Sequence record: NC_048047.1
Direction: 5' to 3' (one strand)
DNA length: 64,000 bases
Under the pieces are notes generated by a model. The model saw nothing but the letters and a program-made list of their open reading frames with translations. It was not told the DNA's origin and did not search any database. Made by a program: the position numbers and the translations under genes. How positions within the stretch are numbered: the first letter of the stretch is position 1; every line of letters begins with the position of its first letter. Shown piece after piece: positions 15,531-28,272 of this stretch.

Positions 15531-15577
15531 GTCACCGTGACGTAATTCTTGACATGGTTAACGGCAGGCCCTATCGT
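15531..15577 (+). promoter_or_regulatory. Sigma70-type promoter with an upstream GTCACCGTGAC palindrome
   Basis: GTCACCGTGAC at 15531-15541; TTGACA at 15549, 17-nt spacer, TATCGT at 15572. Confidence 0.65.
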
Positions 15578-18286: not shown

Positions 18287-18352
18287 ATGACCTTCTCGAC
18301 CTTCCTTTTCCGAGAGATCGGCTCCGCGAGCCGAGATACCACCGCCTCCTAG
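18287..18352 (+). CDS. Putative 21-aa leader peptide MTFSTFLFREIGSASRDTTAS upstream of tRNA-Glu/Asp
   Basis: Same GCCACCTC-ATG start context as the leader at 26798; overlaps alternative hairpins. Confidence 0.4.
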   Translation: MTFSTFLFREIGSASRDTTAS

Positions 18353-18380: not shown

Positions 18381-18457
18381 GGGCCTGTCTTCTAAATGGA
18401 CTAGGAATCTCGGCTTTCAATCGAGCAATGCGGGTTCGAGCCCCGTCAGGCCTACCA
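18381..18457 (+). tRNA. tRNA-Glu(TTC)
   Basis: gggcctg/caggcct acceptor stem; ctcgg-ct TTC aa-tcgag; CCA end. Confidence 0.9.
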
Positions 18458-18483
18458 ACAATTCACGATCGAAAGCCACCCTG

Positions 18484-18559
18484 GGCTCTAGGGTGTGAGG
18501 GTTAGCAACGTCGGCTTGTCAGGCCGGAGGAAGGGGTTCGAGTCCCCTTAGAGTCGCCA
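18484..18559 (+). tRNA. tRNA-Asp(GTC), atypical D-arm
   Basis: Acceptor stem, anticodon arm (tcggc-tt GTC ag-gccgg) and T-arm are good; G at positions 8-9 and a poorly paired D-stem. Confidence 0.8.
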
Positions 18560-19306: not shown

Positions 19307-19426
19307 ATGACCCGCATCCATACCACGCTGCCGACCGCCAAGCCCGCCTCCACCGGCGCGCTGACGCTCGCCTCGTGGCCGGCGTCGAGCAAGCCGCTAT
19401 TGCGGCACTCAGCGGTTCTCGCCTAA
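19307..19426 (+). CDS. 39-aa leader peptide MTRIHTTLPTAKPASTGALTLASWPASSKPLLRHSAVLA of tRNA array 2
   Basis: ATG at 19307, TAA at 19424; 33 of 39 residues are amino acids carried by the 12 downstream tRNAs. Confidence 0.7.
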   Translation: MTRIHTTLPTAKPASTGALTLASWPASSKPLLRHSAVLA

Positions 19427-19545: not shown

Positions 19546-19621
19546 CTTGGCGTAGCGCAGTGGTAGCGCACTCGGTTTGGGACCGAGGGGTCGTGGGTTC
19601 GAATCCTCACCGCCGAGACCA
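19546..19621 (+). tRNA. tRNA-Pro(TGG)
   Basis: ctcgg-tt TGG ga-ccgag; CCA end. Confidence 0.95.
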
Positions 19622-19694
19622 TTTCACCCTCCGCCGGCATTGGCCGGGCGATCCGCGTGCGCCTGGGCGCCGGCGGGGGCGTGTTCTTTGTTGT

Positions 19695-19771
19695 GCCGGT
19701 GTAGCTCAGCCCGGTAGAGCGTCTGCCTCGTAAGCAGGGGGTCCCTGGTTCAAATCCAGGTGTCGGCACCA
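19695..19771 (+). tRNA. tRNA-Thr(CGT)
   Basis: tctgc-ct CGT aa-gcagg; CCA end. Confidence 0.9.
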
Positions 19772-19825
19772 CAAAGAACACGATCGCAAGATCATAGAGA
19801 AGGAACAGACAAGACACAGACTTTC

Positions 19826-19912
19826 GGGCGAGTAGCCGAGTGGTTAAAGGCACCTGACTCTTAATCAGGCGTGAGAAATCCTACGTGGGTTCGAATCCCA
19901 CCTCGCCCTCCA
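19826..19912 (+). tRNA. tRNA-Lys(CTT) with an unusual long variable arm
   Basis: cctga-ct CTT aa-tcagg; 15-nt variable region; T discriminator; CCA end. Confidence 0.85.
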
Positions 19913-19993
19913 TTGATACCCATATTCCCGAGCGGGAAGATGCTGGCCAGGACAGGGGTCCTGGGATGAGAATCTTCCCGCACGGGATCATGG

Positions 19994-20080
19994 GCGGGTG
20001 TGGCGTAGTTGGTAGCCGCGCGAGTTTCAGGTACTCGTGGTCGAAAGGCCGTGGAGGTTCGAATCCTCTCACCCGCACCA
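19994..20080 (+). tRNA. tRNA-Leu(CAG)
   Basis: cgagt-tt CAG gt-actcg; long variable arm; CCA end. Confidence 0.95.
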
Positions 20081-20091
20081 ATCTGACCTGG

Positions 20092-20178
20092 GCCGAGGTG
20101 GCGGAATGGTAGACGCGCCGGCTTCAAGTCCCGTGTGCTCGCAAGAGCGTCCGAGTTCGACTCTCGGCCTCGGCACCA
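20092..20178 (+). tRNA. tRNA-Leu(CAA), weak anticodon stem
   Basis: Leu-type body; ccggc-tt CAA gt-cccgt has only 3 central Watson-Crick pairs. Confidence 0.8.
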
Positions 20179-20220
20179 AGACAGATTGGCGATGGAAAGC
20201 GAAGGTCATGCAAGGACAGG

Positions 20221-20308
20221 GCGGAAGTGGCGTAACGGTAGCCGCGCCAGATTGAGTATCTGGTGATCTGAAAGGGTCGTGGAGGTTCGATTCCTCTCTT
20301 CCGCACCA
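20221..20308 (+). tRNA. tRNA-Leu(GAG)
   Basis: ccaga-tt GAG ta-tctgg; CCA end. Confidence 0.95.
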
Positions 20309-20348
20309 AGTTAAACGAGAAGGAGTATTGAAGAAGTATTTGGTTTGT

Positions 20349-20420
20349 GCTGGAATGGCCTAGCGGTTAAGGCGCTGCATTGTGGATGCAGACACAATGG
20401 TTCGAATCCATTTTCCAGTG
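20349..20420 (+). tRNA. tRNA-His(GTG), no encoded CCA
   Basis: ctgca-tt GTG ga-tgcag; separated from tRNA-Ala by a single C. Confidence 0.85.
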
Positions 20421-20421
20421 C

Positions 20422-20496
20422 GGGGACGTAGCTCAGGGGTAGAGCGCCTGCTTTGCAAGCAGGATGTCGTGGGTTCGAATCCCACCGTCTCCACCA
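20422..20496 (+). tRNA. tRNA-Ala(TGC)
   Basis: G3:U70 pair; cctgc-tt TGC aa-gcagg; CCA end. Confidence 0.95.
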
Positions 20497-20561
20497 GACC
20501 AGGGGACCCAGGTCGCGGCGCCGGATCGGCGACCACCTGGGTCCGTGACAACGAGACGACT

Positions 20562-20655
20562 GGAGGGCTGGCAGAGTCTGGCTGAACGCACCCGATTCGA
20601 AATCGGGCAGGGGCTGAAAGGTCCCTCGGGGGTTCAAATCCCTCGCCCTCCGCCA
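20562..20655 (+). tRNA. tRNA-Ser(CGA)
   Basis: cccga-tt CGA aa-tcggg; long variable arm; GCCA end. Confidence 0.95.
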
Positions 20656-20673
20656 ACACGAGCCGGCATCTAT

Positions 20674-20765
20674 GGAAGGATGGCTGAGTCCGGCTGAAAG
20701 CACCCACCTGGAACGTGGGTAGGCCTTCGCGGGCCTCGGGGGTTCAAATCCCTCTCCTTCCGCCA
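20674..20765 (+). tRNA. tRNA-Ser(GGA)
   Basis: cccac-ct GGA ac-gtggg; long variable arm; GCCA end. Confidence 0.95.
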
Positions 20766-20799
20766 ATACCGAGCCGGCGCGGATCGCCGGCCGAAGCAA

Positions 20800-20889
20800 G
20801 GTGGGTTGACCGAGTGGTAAGGTGCGCGGTTGCTAACCGCAGGTCAGCCTGGAAGGGCTGCGGGGGTTCGATCCCCTCACCCACCGCCA
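20800..20889 (+). tRNA. tRNA-Ser(GCT)
   Basis: gcgg-tt GCT aa-ccgc; long variable arm; GCCA end. Confidence 0.95.
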
Positions 20890-20903
20890 CGCTTCGACGA
20901 TGC

Positions 20904-20980
20904 AGGGGTATAGCTCAACTGGCTAGAGCGGCGGTCTCCAAAACCGCAGGTTGGGGGTTCGAGTCCCTCTGCCCCTGCCA
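20904..20980 (+). tRNA. tRNA-Trp(CCA)
   Basis: gcggt-ct CCA aa-accgc; GCCA end. Confidence 0.95.
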
Positions 20981-26182: not shown

Positions 26183-26713
26183 ATGACCATGATCGTCAAG
26201 ATCATGACGGGCCATGACCTGCCCGACGATTCCCCCTACAAGAGCTTCACCCTGGTGTCGGACGTCAAGAGCCTGACGTTCCATACCCAGACCGACGGCG
26301 AAGGTCGACGCCATTCCTACATGCGCGCCTATATCGCTGATCCGGTGAAGACCGCCGAGGTCCAGGGCTTCAGCGAACACGAGGTCCTCTACGACATTCC
26401 GGCCCAGGCCAATGTCTACGTTATGAACGGCAACGGCAAGACCATCTCGTCCTGGACCCCGCCGCCTGCCGACAGCCAGGGCAAGGTCGACAACGTCACG
26501 CCCCTCCAATTCGTCGACGTCGGCAAAGAGACCATTTATGGTCGCCAAGAGCGCTACTGCGTCCTTCGCGCGGCCGACTTCTTGCCGAAGAAAGCGGCTG
26601 AGTTGGCGGGCTTTGAGCCCGTCGACGAGATCATCAAAGCGCTGGAATCCGATCCCCTGCTGGCGGATCAAATCAGGCAGTTGAAGGCCAAGGCCAAGCC
26701 GTCGTTCGAGTAG
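26183..26713 (+). CDS. Hypothetical protein (176 aa)
   Basis: AAGGAG RBS and good codon bias. Confidence 0.8.
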   Translation: MTMIVKIMTGHDLPDDSPYKSFTLVSDVKSLTFHTQTDGEGRRHSYMRAYIADPVKTAEVQGFSEHEVLYDIPAQANVYVMNGNGKTISSWTPPPADSQGKVDNVTPLQFVDVGKETIYGRQERYCVLRAADFLPKKAAELAGFEPVDEIIKALESDPLLADQIRQLKAKAKPSFE

Positions 26714-26721
26714 GCCCAGAG

Positions 26722-26790
26722 GGCCTGTCAAGAAAAATCACTGTCACCCCGACACGTTTCTTGACAGGCCCATATGGCCTGATGTATAAG
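26722..26790 (+). promoter_or_regulatory. Promoter of tRNA array 3 with a 14-bp inverted repeat over the -35 box
   Basis: GGCCTGTCAAGAAA (26722-35) and TTTCTTGACAGGCC (26757-70); TTGACA-18 nt-TATAAG. Confidence 0.7.
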
Positions 26791-26797
26791 CCACCTC

Positions 26798-26896
26798 ATG
26801 AGCAAGATGTATCGTCAATTTGTGCGCCAGATTCAGTCGGTCCGAGTTAATCGGACGGGCCTTTCGCGCATGGTTGACGGTGGGACCTTCATCTAG
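26798..26896 (+). CDS. 32-aa leader peptide MSKMYRQFVRQIQSVRVNRTGLSRMVDGGTFI of tRNA array 3 (probably leaderless mRNA)
   Basis: ATG lies 7 nt after the -10 box; at codons 5-19, 14 of 15 residues are amino acids of the 8 downstream tRNAs. Confidence 0.75.
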   Translation: MSKMYRQFVRQIQSVRVNRTGLSRMVDGGTFI

Positions 26897-26926
26897 GGTT
26901 CCAACCCCGCTCAAACCCATCCTGCG

Positions 26927-26963
26927 AAGGCCCGTCCGATCTCTCGGACGGGCCTTTTCTTTT
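26927..26963 (+). terminator. Attenuator terminator (3:4) upstream of tRNA array 3
   Basis: AAGGCCCGTCCGA-tctc-TCGGACGGGCCTT-TTCTTTT; the 3' arm is duplicated exactly at 26851-26863. Confidence 0.85.
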
Positions 26964-27010
26964 GTCTTCAAGCCAAGGAGTTTCGCCATGCAAGGCGATG
27001 CCTATCGCTC

Positions 27011-27096
27011 GGGCCGGCTGGGCACGAGCGAGCCCAAGGACCTGTAAAGTCCCCGTGTAAAAGCTGTGGTGGTGCAAATTCCACTCCGGCCCACCA
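27011..27096 (+). tRNA. tRNA-Tyr(GTA), atypical
   Basis: gggccgg/ccggccc acceptor stem; ggac-ct GTA aa-gtcc; non-canonical D- and T-loops; ACCA end. Confidence 0.75.
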
Positions 27097-27128
27097 AATT
27101 CCCGCAGAGTCCGAGTAATCGGCCCTGC

Positions 27129-27200
27129 GCTTCAGTAGCTCAGCGGTAGAGCGCCTCGGTGACATCGAGGAGGTCGTAGGTTCAAGCCCTACCTGAAGCA
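27129..27200 (+). tRNA. tRNA-Val(GAC), no encoded CCA
   Basis: cctcg-gt GAC at-cgagg; separated from tRNA-Ile by a single C. Confidence 0.9.
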
Positions 27201-27201
27201 C

Positions 27202-27277
27202 GCTAGGTTAGCTCAGTTGGTAGAGCACTCGATCGATAATCGAGATGTCACAGGTTCGAGCCCTGTACCTAGCACCA
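27202..27277 (+). tRNA. tRNA-Ile(GAT), C at position 33
   Basis: ctcga-tc GAT aa-tcgag; CCA end. Confidence 0.9.
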
Positions 27278-27284
27278 GACACTT

Positions 27285-27359
27285 TATACGGTTTAGCGTA
27301 TATTCGAGAAATATACGGTTTAGCGTATAATCCATTAGACAAATACGGAATTCCGTATA
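27285..27359. repeat. Three palindromic TATACG-N6-CGTATA boxes
   Basis: 27285-27302 and 27312-27329 are identical 18-mers; 27342-27359 is AATACG-GAATTC-CGTATA. Confidence 0.85.
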
Positions 27360-27393
27360 TTCGATGAGGTGAAGAACGAGAGGAACAAGATAC

Positions 27394-27468
27394 GGGCCGG
27401 TAGCTCAGTGGTAGAGCGCTGCTGTCACATAGCAGATGTCGAGTGTTCGAGACACTCCCGGCCCACCA
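27394..27468 (+). tRNA. tRNA-Val(CAC)
   Basis: ctgct-gt CAC at-agcag; CCA end. Confidence 0.9.
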
Positions 27469-27473
27469 GTTGT

Positions 27474-27547
27474 TGGGGCATGGTGTAATGGTAGCACATT
27501 GGAGTTTGGTTCCAGGAGTCCAGGTTCGAGTCCTGGTGCCCCAGCCA
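27474..27547 (+). tRNA. tRNA-Gln(TTG)
   Basis: ttgga-gt TTG gt-tccag; GCCA end. Confidence 0.9.
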
Positions 27548-27605
27548 ACTAATGAAGACAACGAGGACTGATGTGACCAGTCCAGTGGAGAAGAGACAGG
27601 TTTGT

Positions 27606-27680
27606 TCCCGAGTAGCTCAGTGGTAGAGCGGCTCGCTGTTAACGAGAAGGTCGCAGGTTCGATCCCTGCCTCGGGAGCCA
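27606..27680 (+). tRNA. tRNA-Asn(GTT)
   Basis: ctcg-ct GTT aa-cgag; GCCA end. Confidence 0.95.
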
Positions 27681-27694
27681 ATACTTTTCCCCAC

Positions 27695-27773
27695 GCCCGG
27701 TTAGCTCAGCGGAATTAAGAGCAACGCCCTACGAAGGCGGAGGTCGGGGGTTCGAATCCCTCACCGGGTGCCA
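27695..27773 (+). tRNA. tRNA-Arg(ACG)
   Basis: cgcc-ct ACG aa-ggcg; GCCA end. Confidence 0.95.
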
Positions 27774-27799
27774 TTTTTACTGATGCAGGTCAAACCTGC

Positions 27800-27876
27800 G
27801 GGGGAGTAGCTCAGCCCGGTAGAGCACGGGATTGAAAATCTCGGTGTCGGCGGTTCAAATCCGCCCTCCCCCACCA
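27800..27876 (+). tRNA. tRNA-Phe(GAA)
   Basis: cggga-tt GAA aa-tctcg; ACCA end. Confidence 0.95.
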
Positions 27877-27897
27877 GTTTCTCGGTGACCGCGAGGC

Positions 27898-27931
27898 GGC
27901 CGTCAGGATGTTCGATCCTGGCGGCCTTTTT
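27898..27931 (+). terminator. Terminator closing tRNA array 3
   Basis: GGCCGTCAGGAT-gttcg-ATCCTGGCGGCC-TTTTT. Confidence 0.8.
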
Positions 27932-28077
27932 CATGGATCAAGGGTCACGGAGTCGGGTTCTCGACTTACGCGGAAGTTCTGGATTAAGTAAAACGTCAGG
28001 ATGTATTTTGCAACGCAGCGCCGTGACGCGAATCTTGACACAGAGCACATCCTACCCTACCCTGCAACAAATTTTCA

Positions 28078-28272
28078 ATGGCTCAAGTCGGGGACGCGAG
28101 CATGGCCCATGCCACAGACCGTCCTCCTGAAGCGGCTTCGGAGGAAACCGAACAAACGCCGCGCAGGATGCACGCCATGAAGACGCTCATCGAGCATCTG
28201 CGTCAAGCCCAGATCGAGGCTGAAGCAGAGCACAACGCCCACACCGCGACGCCTCTGTCGAAGGAGGCCTAA
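28078..28272 (+). CDS. Hypothetical protein (64 aa; true start may be a later ATG)
   Basis: Downstream of a TTGACA promoter (28035); its end carries the AGGAGG RBS of the next gene. Confidence 0.5.
   Translation: MAQVGDASMAHATDRPPEAASEETEQTPRRMHAMKTLIEHLRQAQIEAEAEHNAHTATPLSKEA

Follow-up and report, generated by a model that had tools for sequence, protein, structure and literature searches.

A candidate leader-peptide attenuator precedes the transfer RNA genes of Caulobacter phage CcrBL9

A short open reading frame (ORF) in Caulobacter phage CcrBL9, here termed leader C, consists in large part of codons read by the eight transfer RNAs (tRNAs) encoded downstream of it, and its RNA can form the mutually exclusive helices and the intrinsic terminator of an attenuator. 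It seems likely, although well short of certain, that leader C regulates the tRNA operon by ribosome-mediated transcription attenuation of the trp/his type, which would place this operon under negative feedback. The element resides in a 64,000-nucleotide stretch (‘the window’) of the CcrBL9 genome (MH588546.1, 322 kb; Dolichocephalovirinae), wherein each window position equals the MH588546.1 position minus 62000. All evidence on the leader and the tRNA arrays is computational, and comprises the anatomy of the element, its codon statistics, its conservation and covariation, and a thermodynamic switch. Leader C is composed of the following features.

26761..26790, + strand: promoter read from the sequence, with -35 box TTGACA (26761-66), an 18-nucleotide spacer and -10 box TATAAG (26785-90)
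26798..26896, + strand: leader C ORF, 32 codons, MSKMYRQFVRQIQSVRVNRTGLSRMVDGGTFI followed by a stop codon; invariant ATG, insertions and deletions (indels) only in multiples of three, fixed stop position
26810..26851, + strand: regulatory codon run, codons 5-18, encoding Y R Q F V R Q I Q S V R V N; 13 of 14 codons are read by the eight array tRNAs
26811..26831, + strand: segment 1′ within the run, which pairs with 26864-26881 in the minimum-free-energy fold and extends the 1:2 domain
26840..26845, + strand: segment 1, GTCCGA, from the 1:2 helix alignment
26851..26867, + strand: segment 2, TCGGACGGGCCTT(TCGC), whose first 13 nucleotides (26851-63) are an exact copy of segment 4
26882..26902, + strand: apical hairpin of the antiterminator, with the UAG stop codon (26894-96) in the 3′ arm beside the loop
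26925..26939, + strand: segment 3, (CG)AAGGCCCGTCCGA (AAGGCCCGTCCGA at 26927-39), common to antiterminator 2:3 and terminator 3:4
26944..26963, + strand: segment 4, TCGGACGGGCCTT (26944-56), plus the U-tract TTCTTTT, forming an intrinsic terminator with segment 3

The region downstream of this terminator carries the tRNA array and two further elements.

26975..27047, + strand: Shine-Dalgarno sequence AAGGAG (26975-80) and a second small ORF (ATG at 26988) that overlaps the 5′ half of tRNA-Tyr
27011..27096, + strand: tRNA-Tyr (GTA), unannotated, with a long variable arm, T-loop UGCAAAU and encoded CCA; relaxed ARAGORN call and cloverleaf
27129..27277, + strand: tRNA-Val (GAC) at 27129-27201 and tRNA-Ile (GAT) at 27202-27277; ARAGORN, Rfam and GenBank
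27286..27358, + strand: spacer with three palindromes (ATACGGTTTAGCGTAT twice and ATACGGAATTCCGTAT) and a promoter-like TCGAGA-N16-TATAAT (27304-27331)
27394..27876, + strand: tRNA-Val (CAC), tRNA-Gln (TTG), tRNA-Asn (GTT), tRNA-Arg (ACG) and tRNA-Phe (GAA); ARAGORN, Rfam and GenBank
27898..27926, + strand: intrinsic terminator closing the array, from a consensus scan

A sequence-only reading of this DNA had proposed the promoter, the 32-codon ORF, segments 1 through 4 and the U-tract, all of which are present exactly where it placed them. The same reading quoted codons 5 through 18 correctly, and its assertion that all eight tRNAs are represented there, with one Ser codon as the sole exception, proved to describe the best among all 127,918 windows of 14 codons that the six reading frames of the stretch contain. 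Under standard wobble rules the eight array anticodons read 16 codons, and the run at 26810 is the only window with 13 of 14 codons from this set. The next best loci reach 11 set codons, and no other window with at least 11 represents all eight tRNAs. Set codons make up 0.305 of the codons in the long ORFs of the phage, such that the proposed binomial test of leader composition against phage codon usage yields P(≥13/14) = 1.9e-6. Eight of the 14 run codons are minor synonyms in phage genes (ATT 0.09, GTT 0.09, CGA 0.11, TTT 0.14, CGT 0.16 and AAT 0.19). The out-of-set TCG (Ser) codon of CcrBL9 is TTC (Phe) in CcrSC and in the RB23 group, giving a match of 14 of 14 in those phages.

To examine the conservation of leader C, 17 distinct sequences of the element were assembled from Bertelyvirus, Colossusvirus, Poindextervirus, Shapirovirus and unclassified Brevundimonas phages. 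These relatives all belong to one subfamily, and therefore the sequence counts given here are not counts of independent events. The phages that carry leader C have Caulobacter and Brevundimonas as hosts and span at least four genera. They include Karma and Magneto, close relatives of the laboratory phage phiCbK, which on this evidence has the leader as well. A blastn search with the leader C sequence of a relative matched 39 phage records, every one from Dolichocephalovirinae, and a scan of IMG/VR with a structure-aware DNA pattern uncovered no new leader members, returning only sequenced isolates and false positives with collagen-like GGX repeats. The leader and its four segments are present in all 17 relatives that keep the array, and thus the loss of the leader from array-bearing relatives, which had been put forward as evidence that would speak against the proposal, is not observed.

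The manner in which leader C varies is that of a translated frame. The ORF is 31 or 32 codons long in all 17 phages, all indels within it are multiples of three nucleotides, and indels of other lengths start directly after the stop codon. The position of the stop is fixed and its identity is not (TAG in 12 phages, TAA in four and TGA in one), and synonymous changes occur. From these signs, together with the invariant ATG, we infer that leader C is translated. Two other coding interpretations of the same DNA were considered and rejected. Antisense and +1 frames across the leader are open in several phages, as expected at 64% G+C, and are broken in others, being shifted past the leader stop by indels that are not multiples of three. 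Likewise, a degenerate tRNA within the leader, suggested by a T-arm-like stretch (GGTTCCAACCCC), receives no support from Rfam or ARAGORN.

Changes within the run are restricted to a small alphabet. Across the 14 run columns, 235 of 236 codons specify Y, R, Q, N, F, V or I. Variation occurs in ten of these columns, and of the 14 alternative residues seen there, 13 belong to the same seven letters, with swaps that are chemically unlike and that in some instances require three base changes (TTT to AAC). Outside of the run, the peptide includes many residues beyond the seven. Retention of this alphabet despite such unlike swaps is expected if selection acts on the decoding tRNAs rather than on the peptide.

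These data bear on a quite unlikely alternative, in which leader C is a conserved micro-protein gene with its own promoter and terminator. The codon match would then be a by-product, for example of an early, highly expressed gene tuned to the phage tRNAs, and expression of the tRNAs themselves would rely on leak-through or on other promoters. At the amino-acid level, five run positions and the motif R(A/T)G(R)S..DGG show conservation, and some genome annotations list the ORF, in this or a longer form, as a hypothetical protein. However, the variable positions exchange unlike residues (F/N, V/N/F and N/I/F/Y) and never leave the seven-letter alphabet, and the R(A/T)GRS motif coincides with segment 2, which covaries with segments 1 and 3. 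Furthermore, there is no evident promoter between the terminator and tRNA-Tyr, and neither the peptides of leader C and of the two additional leaders described below nor the antisense ORF match any PHROGs or Pfam family. Codon tuning also cannot explain why two leaders of one phage carry disjoint codon sets that each match their own array.

Seven array tRNAs (27129-27876) are found by both ARAGORN and Rfam, and the same seven are present in GenBank. The Tyr-GTA gene is missed by ARAGORN at its default setting and by Rfam at its thresholds, and is absent from the GenBank annotation. At a relaxed threshold, ARAGORN calls this tRNA at exactly 27011-27096, RNAalifold yields a cloverleaf common to six homologues in which nine of 22 pairs show compensatory changes, and Tyr-GTA is annotated at the homologous place in Brevundimonas phages. 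Its T-loop is unusual in that G is found where U55 is expected. On the strength of the relaxed call, the compensatory cloverleaf and the Brevundimonas annotation, we judge this to be a real tRNA gene, in agreement with the sequence-only reading, and it is present in every lineage examined. The genome paper on phiCbK-like phages reports no Tyr tRNA and no RNA elements besides tRNAs (PMC3556154).

Default tools likewise give the impression that the arrays of some relatives are devoid of Phe, Arg, Asn or Tyr, and non-canonical copies of these tRNAs are recovered in the same arrays by relaxed ARAGORN and by Rfam searches judged on E-value. A ‘tRNA-Ile (AAT)’ call in phiCbK-like phages has the anticodon loop CUGUUAA, which by eye reads as Asn-GTT. 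Once such weak tRNAs are counted, the array of every lineage is composed of Tyr, Phe, Val, Ile, Gln, Asn and Arg, which is precisely the alphabet of the run. At the level of anticodons, the run contains CGG solely in phages with Arg-CCG in the array, and phages of the CcrBL9 type, whose only Arg tRNA is Arg-ACG, use CGT, CGC and CGA.

Two additional small ORFs precede other tRNA genes in the window, and offer a comparison within the same genome.

19307..19426, + strand: leader B ORF, 39 codons, MTRIHTTLPTAKPASTGALTLASWPASSKPLLRHSAVLA followed by a stop codon; upstream of the 12-tRNA array at 19546-20980
18287..18352, + strand: leader D ORF, 21 codons, MTFSTFLFREIGSASRDTTAS followed by a stop codon; upstream of tRNA-Glu and tRNA-Asp (18381-18559)

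Each of the 12 tRNAs in the array behind leader B has one or more cognate codons in this ORF. Such complete coverage is found in only six of the 127,852 twenty-five-codon windows of the stretch, and all six are inside leader B. This leader is identical in CcrSC and differs in RB23 only by CCG to ACG and CTG to CTT, both within the array-decoded set, and its flanks diverge with indels. It is annotated as a hypothetical protein in CcrSC and RB23. Among 10 phages with differing arrays, each array tRNA has a codon in leader B in every case; TGG appears there only where the array has tRNA-Trp, and AAA accompanies Lys-TTT in nine phages, with Kikimora as the exception. The codon sets of leaders B and C are nearly disjoint, and each fits its own array (13/1 vs 3/22; Fisher p = 8.6e-7). 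Therefore, general codon bias cannot explain the two leaders. Leader D is conserved in eight phages as ..(Y)ERE..GRDTTAA followed by a stop codon, with one or two Glu codons and one Asp codon, a match that is not significant alone.

The RNA structures of leader C were evaluated by folding and by covariation. The fold of the full leader (26798-26966) comprises the 1:2 domain and the 3:4 terminator with a hairpin between them (-77.4 kcal/mol, z = -5.9), and a consensus scan lists this terminator at 26926-26963 with 14 pairs. A leader that is cut before segment 4 instead folds into a long 2:3 helix, which comprises 13 contiguous base pairs in CcrBL9. This fold, along with the exact identity of the 13 nucleotides shared by segments 2 and 4, bears out the earlier proposal that 2:3 is a ready antiterminator. 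The exact 9-mer core GGACGGGCC occurs at just three sites in the 64 kb, all of which are in the leader element; a dispersed repeat as the source of segments 2 and 4 was excluded on this basis, and the duplication is local.

In the 17-sequence alignment, the 3:4 helix is paired in 98.5% of cells with three covarying pairs, the 2:3 core in 91% with four pairs changed on both sides, and the 1:2 core in 95% with two covarying pairs, as compared to no more than 64% in slid controls whose partners were moved by one to three columns. For example, an A/U/A combination at corresponding positions of segments 2, 3 and 4 in CcrBL9 is replaced by G/C/G in RB23, BL10 and Kikimora. The extended 1′:2′ helix is paired in 76% of cells across the 17 phages, versus 19-43% in slid controls, and we have moderate confidence in this predicted extension of the 1:2 domain by segment 1′.

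A mask-fold analysis was used to represent the effect of a ribosome on these alternatives. A 28-nucleotide ribosome footprint was masked at each A-site codon and the CcrBL9 transcript was refolded with segment 4 present. Without a ribosome the terminator forms; with A-site codons 2 through 14 the 13-base-pair antiterminator forms; and with codons 15 through 33 the terminator returns. This order, together with the compensatory changes in 1:2, 2:3 and 3:4, agrees with the trp/his-type layout that the sequence-only reading had recognized. Across the family, an antiterminator window is observed at approximately codons 10 through 14 in 12 of 17 phages, and so equilibrium mask-folding was set aside as a proof of the switch.

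A leader-peptide attenuator is recognizable by five characteristics at the sequence level, each of which is evident in the layout of leader C. A short promoter-proximal ORF with what appears to be a credible start lies ahead of the genes to be regulated, and this ORF is enriched in cognate regulatory codons. An intrinsic terminator separates the leader from these genes in 17 phages, an antiterminator that uses the 5′ arm of the terminator is within reach of the ribosome, and an anti-antiterminator (1:2) overlaps the regulatory codons, with the mask-fold switch falling at codon 14/15 in CcrBL9. The ORF ends past segment 2, with its stop codon 31 nucleotides farther on at the tip of the antiterminator.

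We see only a very slim chance that the region is instead a structured non-coding RNA with an incidental ORF, either a small RNA (sRNA) that ends at the terminator or a T-box-type riboregulator that binds tRNA. Nucleotide conservation of the leader exceeds that of its flanks, the fold z-score noted above is strong, and other frames are also open in this GC-rich sequence, as such an RNA might lead one to expect. Those other frames, however, are broken past the stop by indels that are not multiples of three, whereas the leader frame bears signatures of translation: indels in multiples of three, a fixed stop position with interchanged codons, a fixed distance from ATG to the -10 box, and a frame-specific alphabet. 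Rfam contains neither a T-box nor another family that matches the locus; there is no T-box match at E ≤ 1 over 26500-28100, and no T-box or other leader RNA family reaches gathering score in the whole window.

Both promoter boxes of leader C are retained in all 17 phages, with a -35 box of TTGAC(A), and the ATG is located 7 nucleotides 3′ of the -10 box, or 9 nucleotides in CcrPW and Colossus. No Shine-Dalgarno sequence precedes this start in any of the 17 phages. An ATG that lies 7-9 nucleotides after a -10 box implies a start codon at or next to the transcription start, and the leader C messenger RNA (mRNA) is therefore probably leaderless, as judged from this spacing. The leader D ORFs of relatives are likewise found 7-9 nucleotides after a -10 box, which suggests that the leader D mRNA is probably leaderless as well. 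Leaderless mRNAs are frequent in C. crescentus (375) and are efficiently and normally translated (PMC4117421).

These features suggest a mechanism for which we infer from the architecture where transcription begins, that the leader is translated, in which direction regulation runs and which physiological signal is sensed. Host RNA polymerase would start at or beside the A of the ATG at 26798 to produce a leaderless leader mRNA, and a 70S ribosome would translate the 32 codons behind the polymerase. Many of the run codons are minor synonyms that are read by wobble. If charged tRNAs are plentiful and decoding is quick, the ribosome would melt segment 2 before segments 3 and 4 emerge, permitting 3:4 to form and transcription to stop at 26963. 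If no ribosome is present, the 1:2 domain would sequester segment 2, again leading to termination. If decoding is slow, a ribosome in the first part of the run would cover segments 1 and 1′, and segment 2, no longer sequestered, would pair with segment 3. Formation of the terminator would thereby be blocked, and polymerase would read into Tyr-Val-Ile-(Val-Gln-Asn-Arg-Phe). In this manner, the phage would top up its tRNAs when the summed decoding time of the array codons is long. Because array tRNAs are co-transcribed, their levels should move together, and the run would integrate supply even with one or two codons for each tRNA.

Several observations weigh against attenuation as outlined. Most tRNAs are represented by one or two run codons, as compared to runs of 2-7 in classical leaders, and sensitivity would require the levels of all array tRNAs to change in concert. 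These codons are also decoded by host tRNAs, and therefore the sensor cannot be specific for phage tRNAs. Run positions Y5, R6, V9, I12 and R16 are invariant, which could reflect RNA pairing or peptide function. Codons 15-18 (GTC CGA GTT AAT) fall in the terminator-favoring zone of the CcrBL9 mask-fold, and codons 15, 17 and 18 are the sole Val-GAC and Asn codons of the run; the claim of the sequence-only reading that stalling at ‘any’ of the eight tRNAs would open the switch is consequently too broad. The equilibrium fold favors the terminator throughout in CcrPW, Colossus, Karma, Magneto and BL57, and kinetics would have to decide the outcome in these five phages.

Another expectation of the sequence-only reading was that leader codons should track array content. 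The isotypes agree in every lineage, but the isotype content of the array is invariant, which makes this agreement uninformative and leaves tracking checkable at the anticodon level only. There the outcome is mixed: CGG follows Arg-CCG in leader C and TGG follows Trp in leader B, whereas AAA follows Lys-TTT in nine phages and departs from it in Kikimora. It is also uncertain that the switch governs the ‘whole array’, as had been stated, given the promoter-like site at 27304-27331 and the three palindromes inside the array. The 27304-27331 element could free the distal five tRNAs from the attenuator. Finally, no canonical U-tract terminator follows leader B in CcrBL9, and the same is true of RB23 and CcrPW.

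This last point raises the possibility, which we regard as unlikely, that codon content matters in a translated leader, but that the read-out is something other than attenuation at an intrinsic terminator. Rho-dependent termination, RNase processing, the stability of precursor tRNAs, or a reversed polarity (feed-forward) are examples. In CcrBL9, RB23 and CcrPW, leader B offers alternative pairings (CCGGGTGC / GCACCCG / CCGGGTGC) and a C-rich, G-poor stretch in place of a canonical terminator, and leader D is accompanied by just a small hairpin around its stop codon, approximately 25 nucleotides before tRNA-Glu. The stop codon resides in a hairpin loop in leaders B and D (in most of the eight phages for leader D) and in the stem beside the loop in leader C. 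A conserved Shine-Dalgarno sequence and mini-ORF after the leader C terminator, as well as the five phages devoid of an equilibrium antiterminator, are also compatible with another read-out. In opposition, leader C carries a textbook intrinsic terminator in 17 of 17 phages together with a mutually exclusive, covarying 2:3 helix, and the terminator, antiterminator, terminator order of the mask-fold fits classical polarity. A canonical intrinsic terminator does follow leader B in BL10, Magneto, BL57, Bajun and Kikimora.

If attenuation by leader C is viewed along with leaders B and D, we see roughly even odds that each major tRNA array of Dolichocephalovirinae is placed behind its own self-test mini-gene, a short ORF that the tRNAs of that array must decode and whose transit time sets the level of read-through. 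The same even judgment applies to the elaborated, modular form of this design, in which at least two independent leader families with disjoint codon alphabets operate in one genome and leaders C and D are leaderless. Other tRNA-rich phages may employ such a design. A leader of this type could also act in response to depletion or cleavage of host tRNAs, by raising the output of replacement tRNAs; a response to cleavage by a host anticodon nuclease, which the sequence-only reading had given as an example, is a purely speculative use.

Leader C has its closest counterparts among the leader-peptide attenuators (as defined in PMC1183508) of enterobacteria, which include trpL, hisL, leuL and pheL as well as the multivalent thrL and ilvL. 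All share a short codon-rich ORF, four segments that form exclusive 1:2, 2:3 and 3:4 helices, an intrinsic terminator, and independence from any trans-acting protein. The use of rare synonymous codons is shared with leuL, and ilvL and thrL likewise sense several amino acids at once. The enterobacterial leaders regulate biosynthetic enzymes, whereas leader C would regulate tRNAs, such that the product is the sensed molecule and feedback is direct. Leader C also differs in that it represents seven amino acids and eight tRNAs, most of them by one or two codons, in its probably leaderless mRNA, and in being carried by a phage. In contrast to trp, the leader C ORF extends across segment 2, and its stop codon falls at the antiterminator apex.

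The E. coli pheST attenuator similarly applies leader-peptide attenuation to a component of translation, read through the charging of tRNA-Phe, although it controls a synthetase, senses a single amino acid and is cellular. T-box riboswitches resemble leader C in that translation-related genes are controlled by a choice between terminator and antiterminator that reflects the state of one specific tRNA, but they bind uncharged tRNA directly by using a specifier codon and the T-box sequence, and require no ribosome. The trpL system of Sinorhizobium meliloti, including its attenuator RNA rnTrpL, demonstrates that ribosome-mediated attenuation works in Alphaproteobacteria, the class of the phage hosts (PMC6614838). 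In that organism the released attenuator RNA can act as an sRNA, which is also possible for the terminated leader C RNA of ~166 nucleotides, and the system differs from leader C in controlling Trp biosynthesis, in being cellular and in having a leadered mRNA (PMC6614838).

Full-text literature searches revealed no account of tRNA genes, either phage or cellular, that are controlled by a leader peptide, consistent with the earlier statement that no phage tRNA array was known to be regulated in this way. To our knowledge, the regulation of phage tRNA arrays is essentially undescribed, and leader C bears on why phages carry tRNAs and how they dose them. If the proposed mechanism is correct, the phage gauges decoding speed on exactly the codons of its array and adjusts tRNA synthesis. 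We know of no tRNA operon controlled by a loop in which the sensed molecule is also the product, and these would be the first tRNA genes found to be autoregulated via translation of a cognate-codon leader. Leader C would also represent a natural, compact sensor of tRNA supply, if it works as outlined. Independently of any mechanism, the analysis improves annotation by adding Tyr, Phe, Asn and Arg tRNAs of these phages that standard tools miss.

The DNA surrounding the leader C promoter exhibits additional symmetry.

26721..26771, + strand: 15-base-pair inverted repeat, GGGCCTGTCAAGAAA (26721-35) and TTTCTTGACAGGCCC (26757-71), encompassing the -35 box; read from the sequence
1260, 8087, 15546, 19169, 22908, 23382, 26727, 26758, 29837, 31954, 41327 and 61668: copies of TTCTTGAC

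A sigma-70 scan of the window does not list the promoter at 26761-26790, an omission caused by the G at the end of its -10 box. The promoter spacer is filled by the palindrome AGGCCcatatGGCCT. The inverted repeat is partly retained in CcrSC and RB23, and through it the -35 box has a mirror-image counterpart on the opposite strand. This repeat and the palindrome could be operator sites or reflect a divergent promoter. The sequence TTCTTGAC is present in 12 copies in the window versus 1.1 expected, with copies on both strands at the 26721-26771 repeat, and an A-tract plus GTCACC precede it at 15546, 19169 and 26758. These sites likely represent a shared family of phage promoters.

Within the array, palindromes ATACGGTTTAGCGTAT and ATACGGAATTCCGTAT occupy the 116-nucleotide spacer between tRNA-Ile and tRNA-Val (CAC) and are the only such sites in the window. 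Their half-sites are conserved, with a symmetric compensatory change in RB23, and in other genera the place of this spacer is taken by a second tRNA-Ile. The 27286-27358 region may be an internal promoter with operators, or may form RNA hairpins. The small ORF that begins at 26988 comprises 19 codons in CcrBL9 and 4-5 codons in relatives (MNNGG, MTGGD and MTGN, each followed by a stop codon), and the mini-ORF is lost in Karma/Magneto and Bajun.

Additional RNA features were noted in relatives. The Rfam ‘skipping-rope’ RNA scores above gathering directly after the Trp-Gly-Gly array of CcrBL10 (L009 6076-6172), and a partial match resembling transfer-messenger RNA (tmRNA), below gathering score, lies in a Ser tRNA cluster of Kikimora (L010 11898-12029); the CcrBL9 window has no counterpart of either at gathering score. 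The Tyr, Phe, Asn and Arg genes of relatives exhibit odd T-loops (G at position 55) or long extra arms. Unannotated or missed tRNA sites are found in relatives at L007 15311-15472, L016 2883-3156, and L014 2231-2390 and 2879-3074, and in Kikimora at L010 17004-17189.

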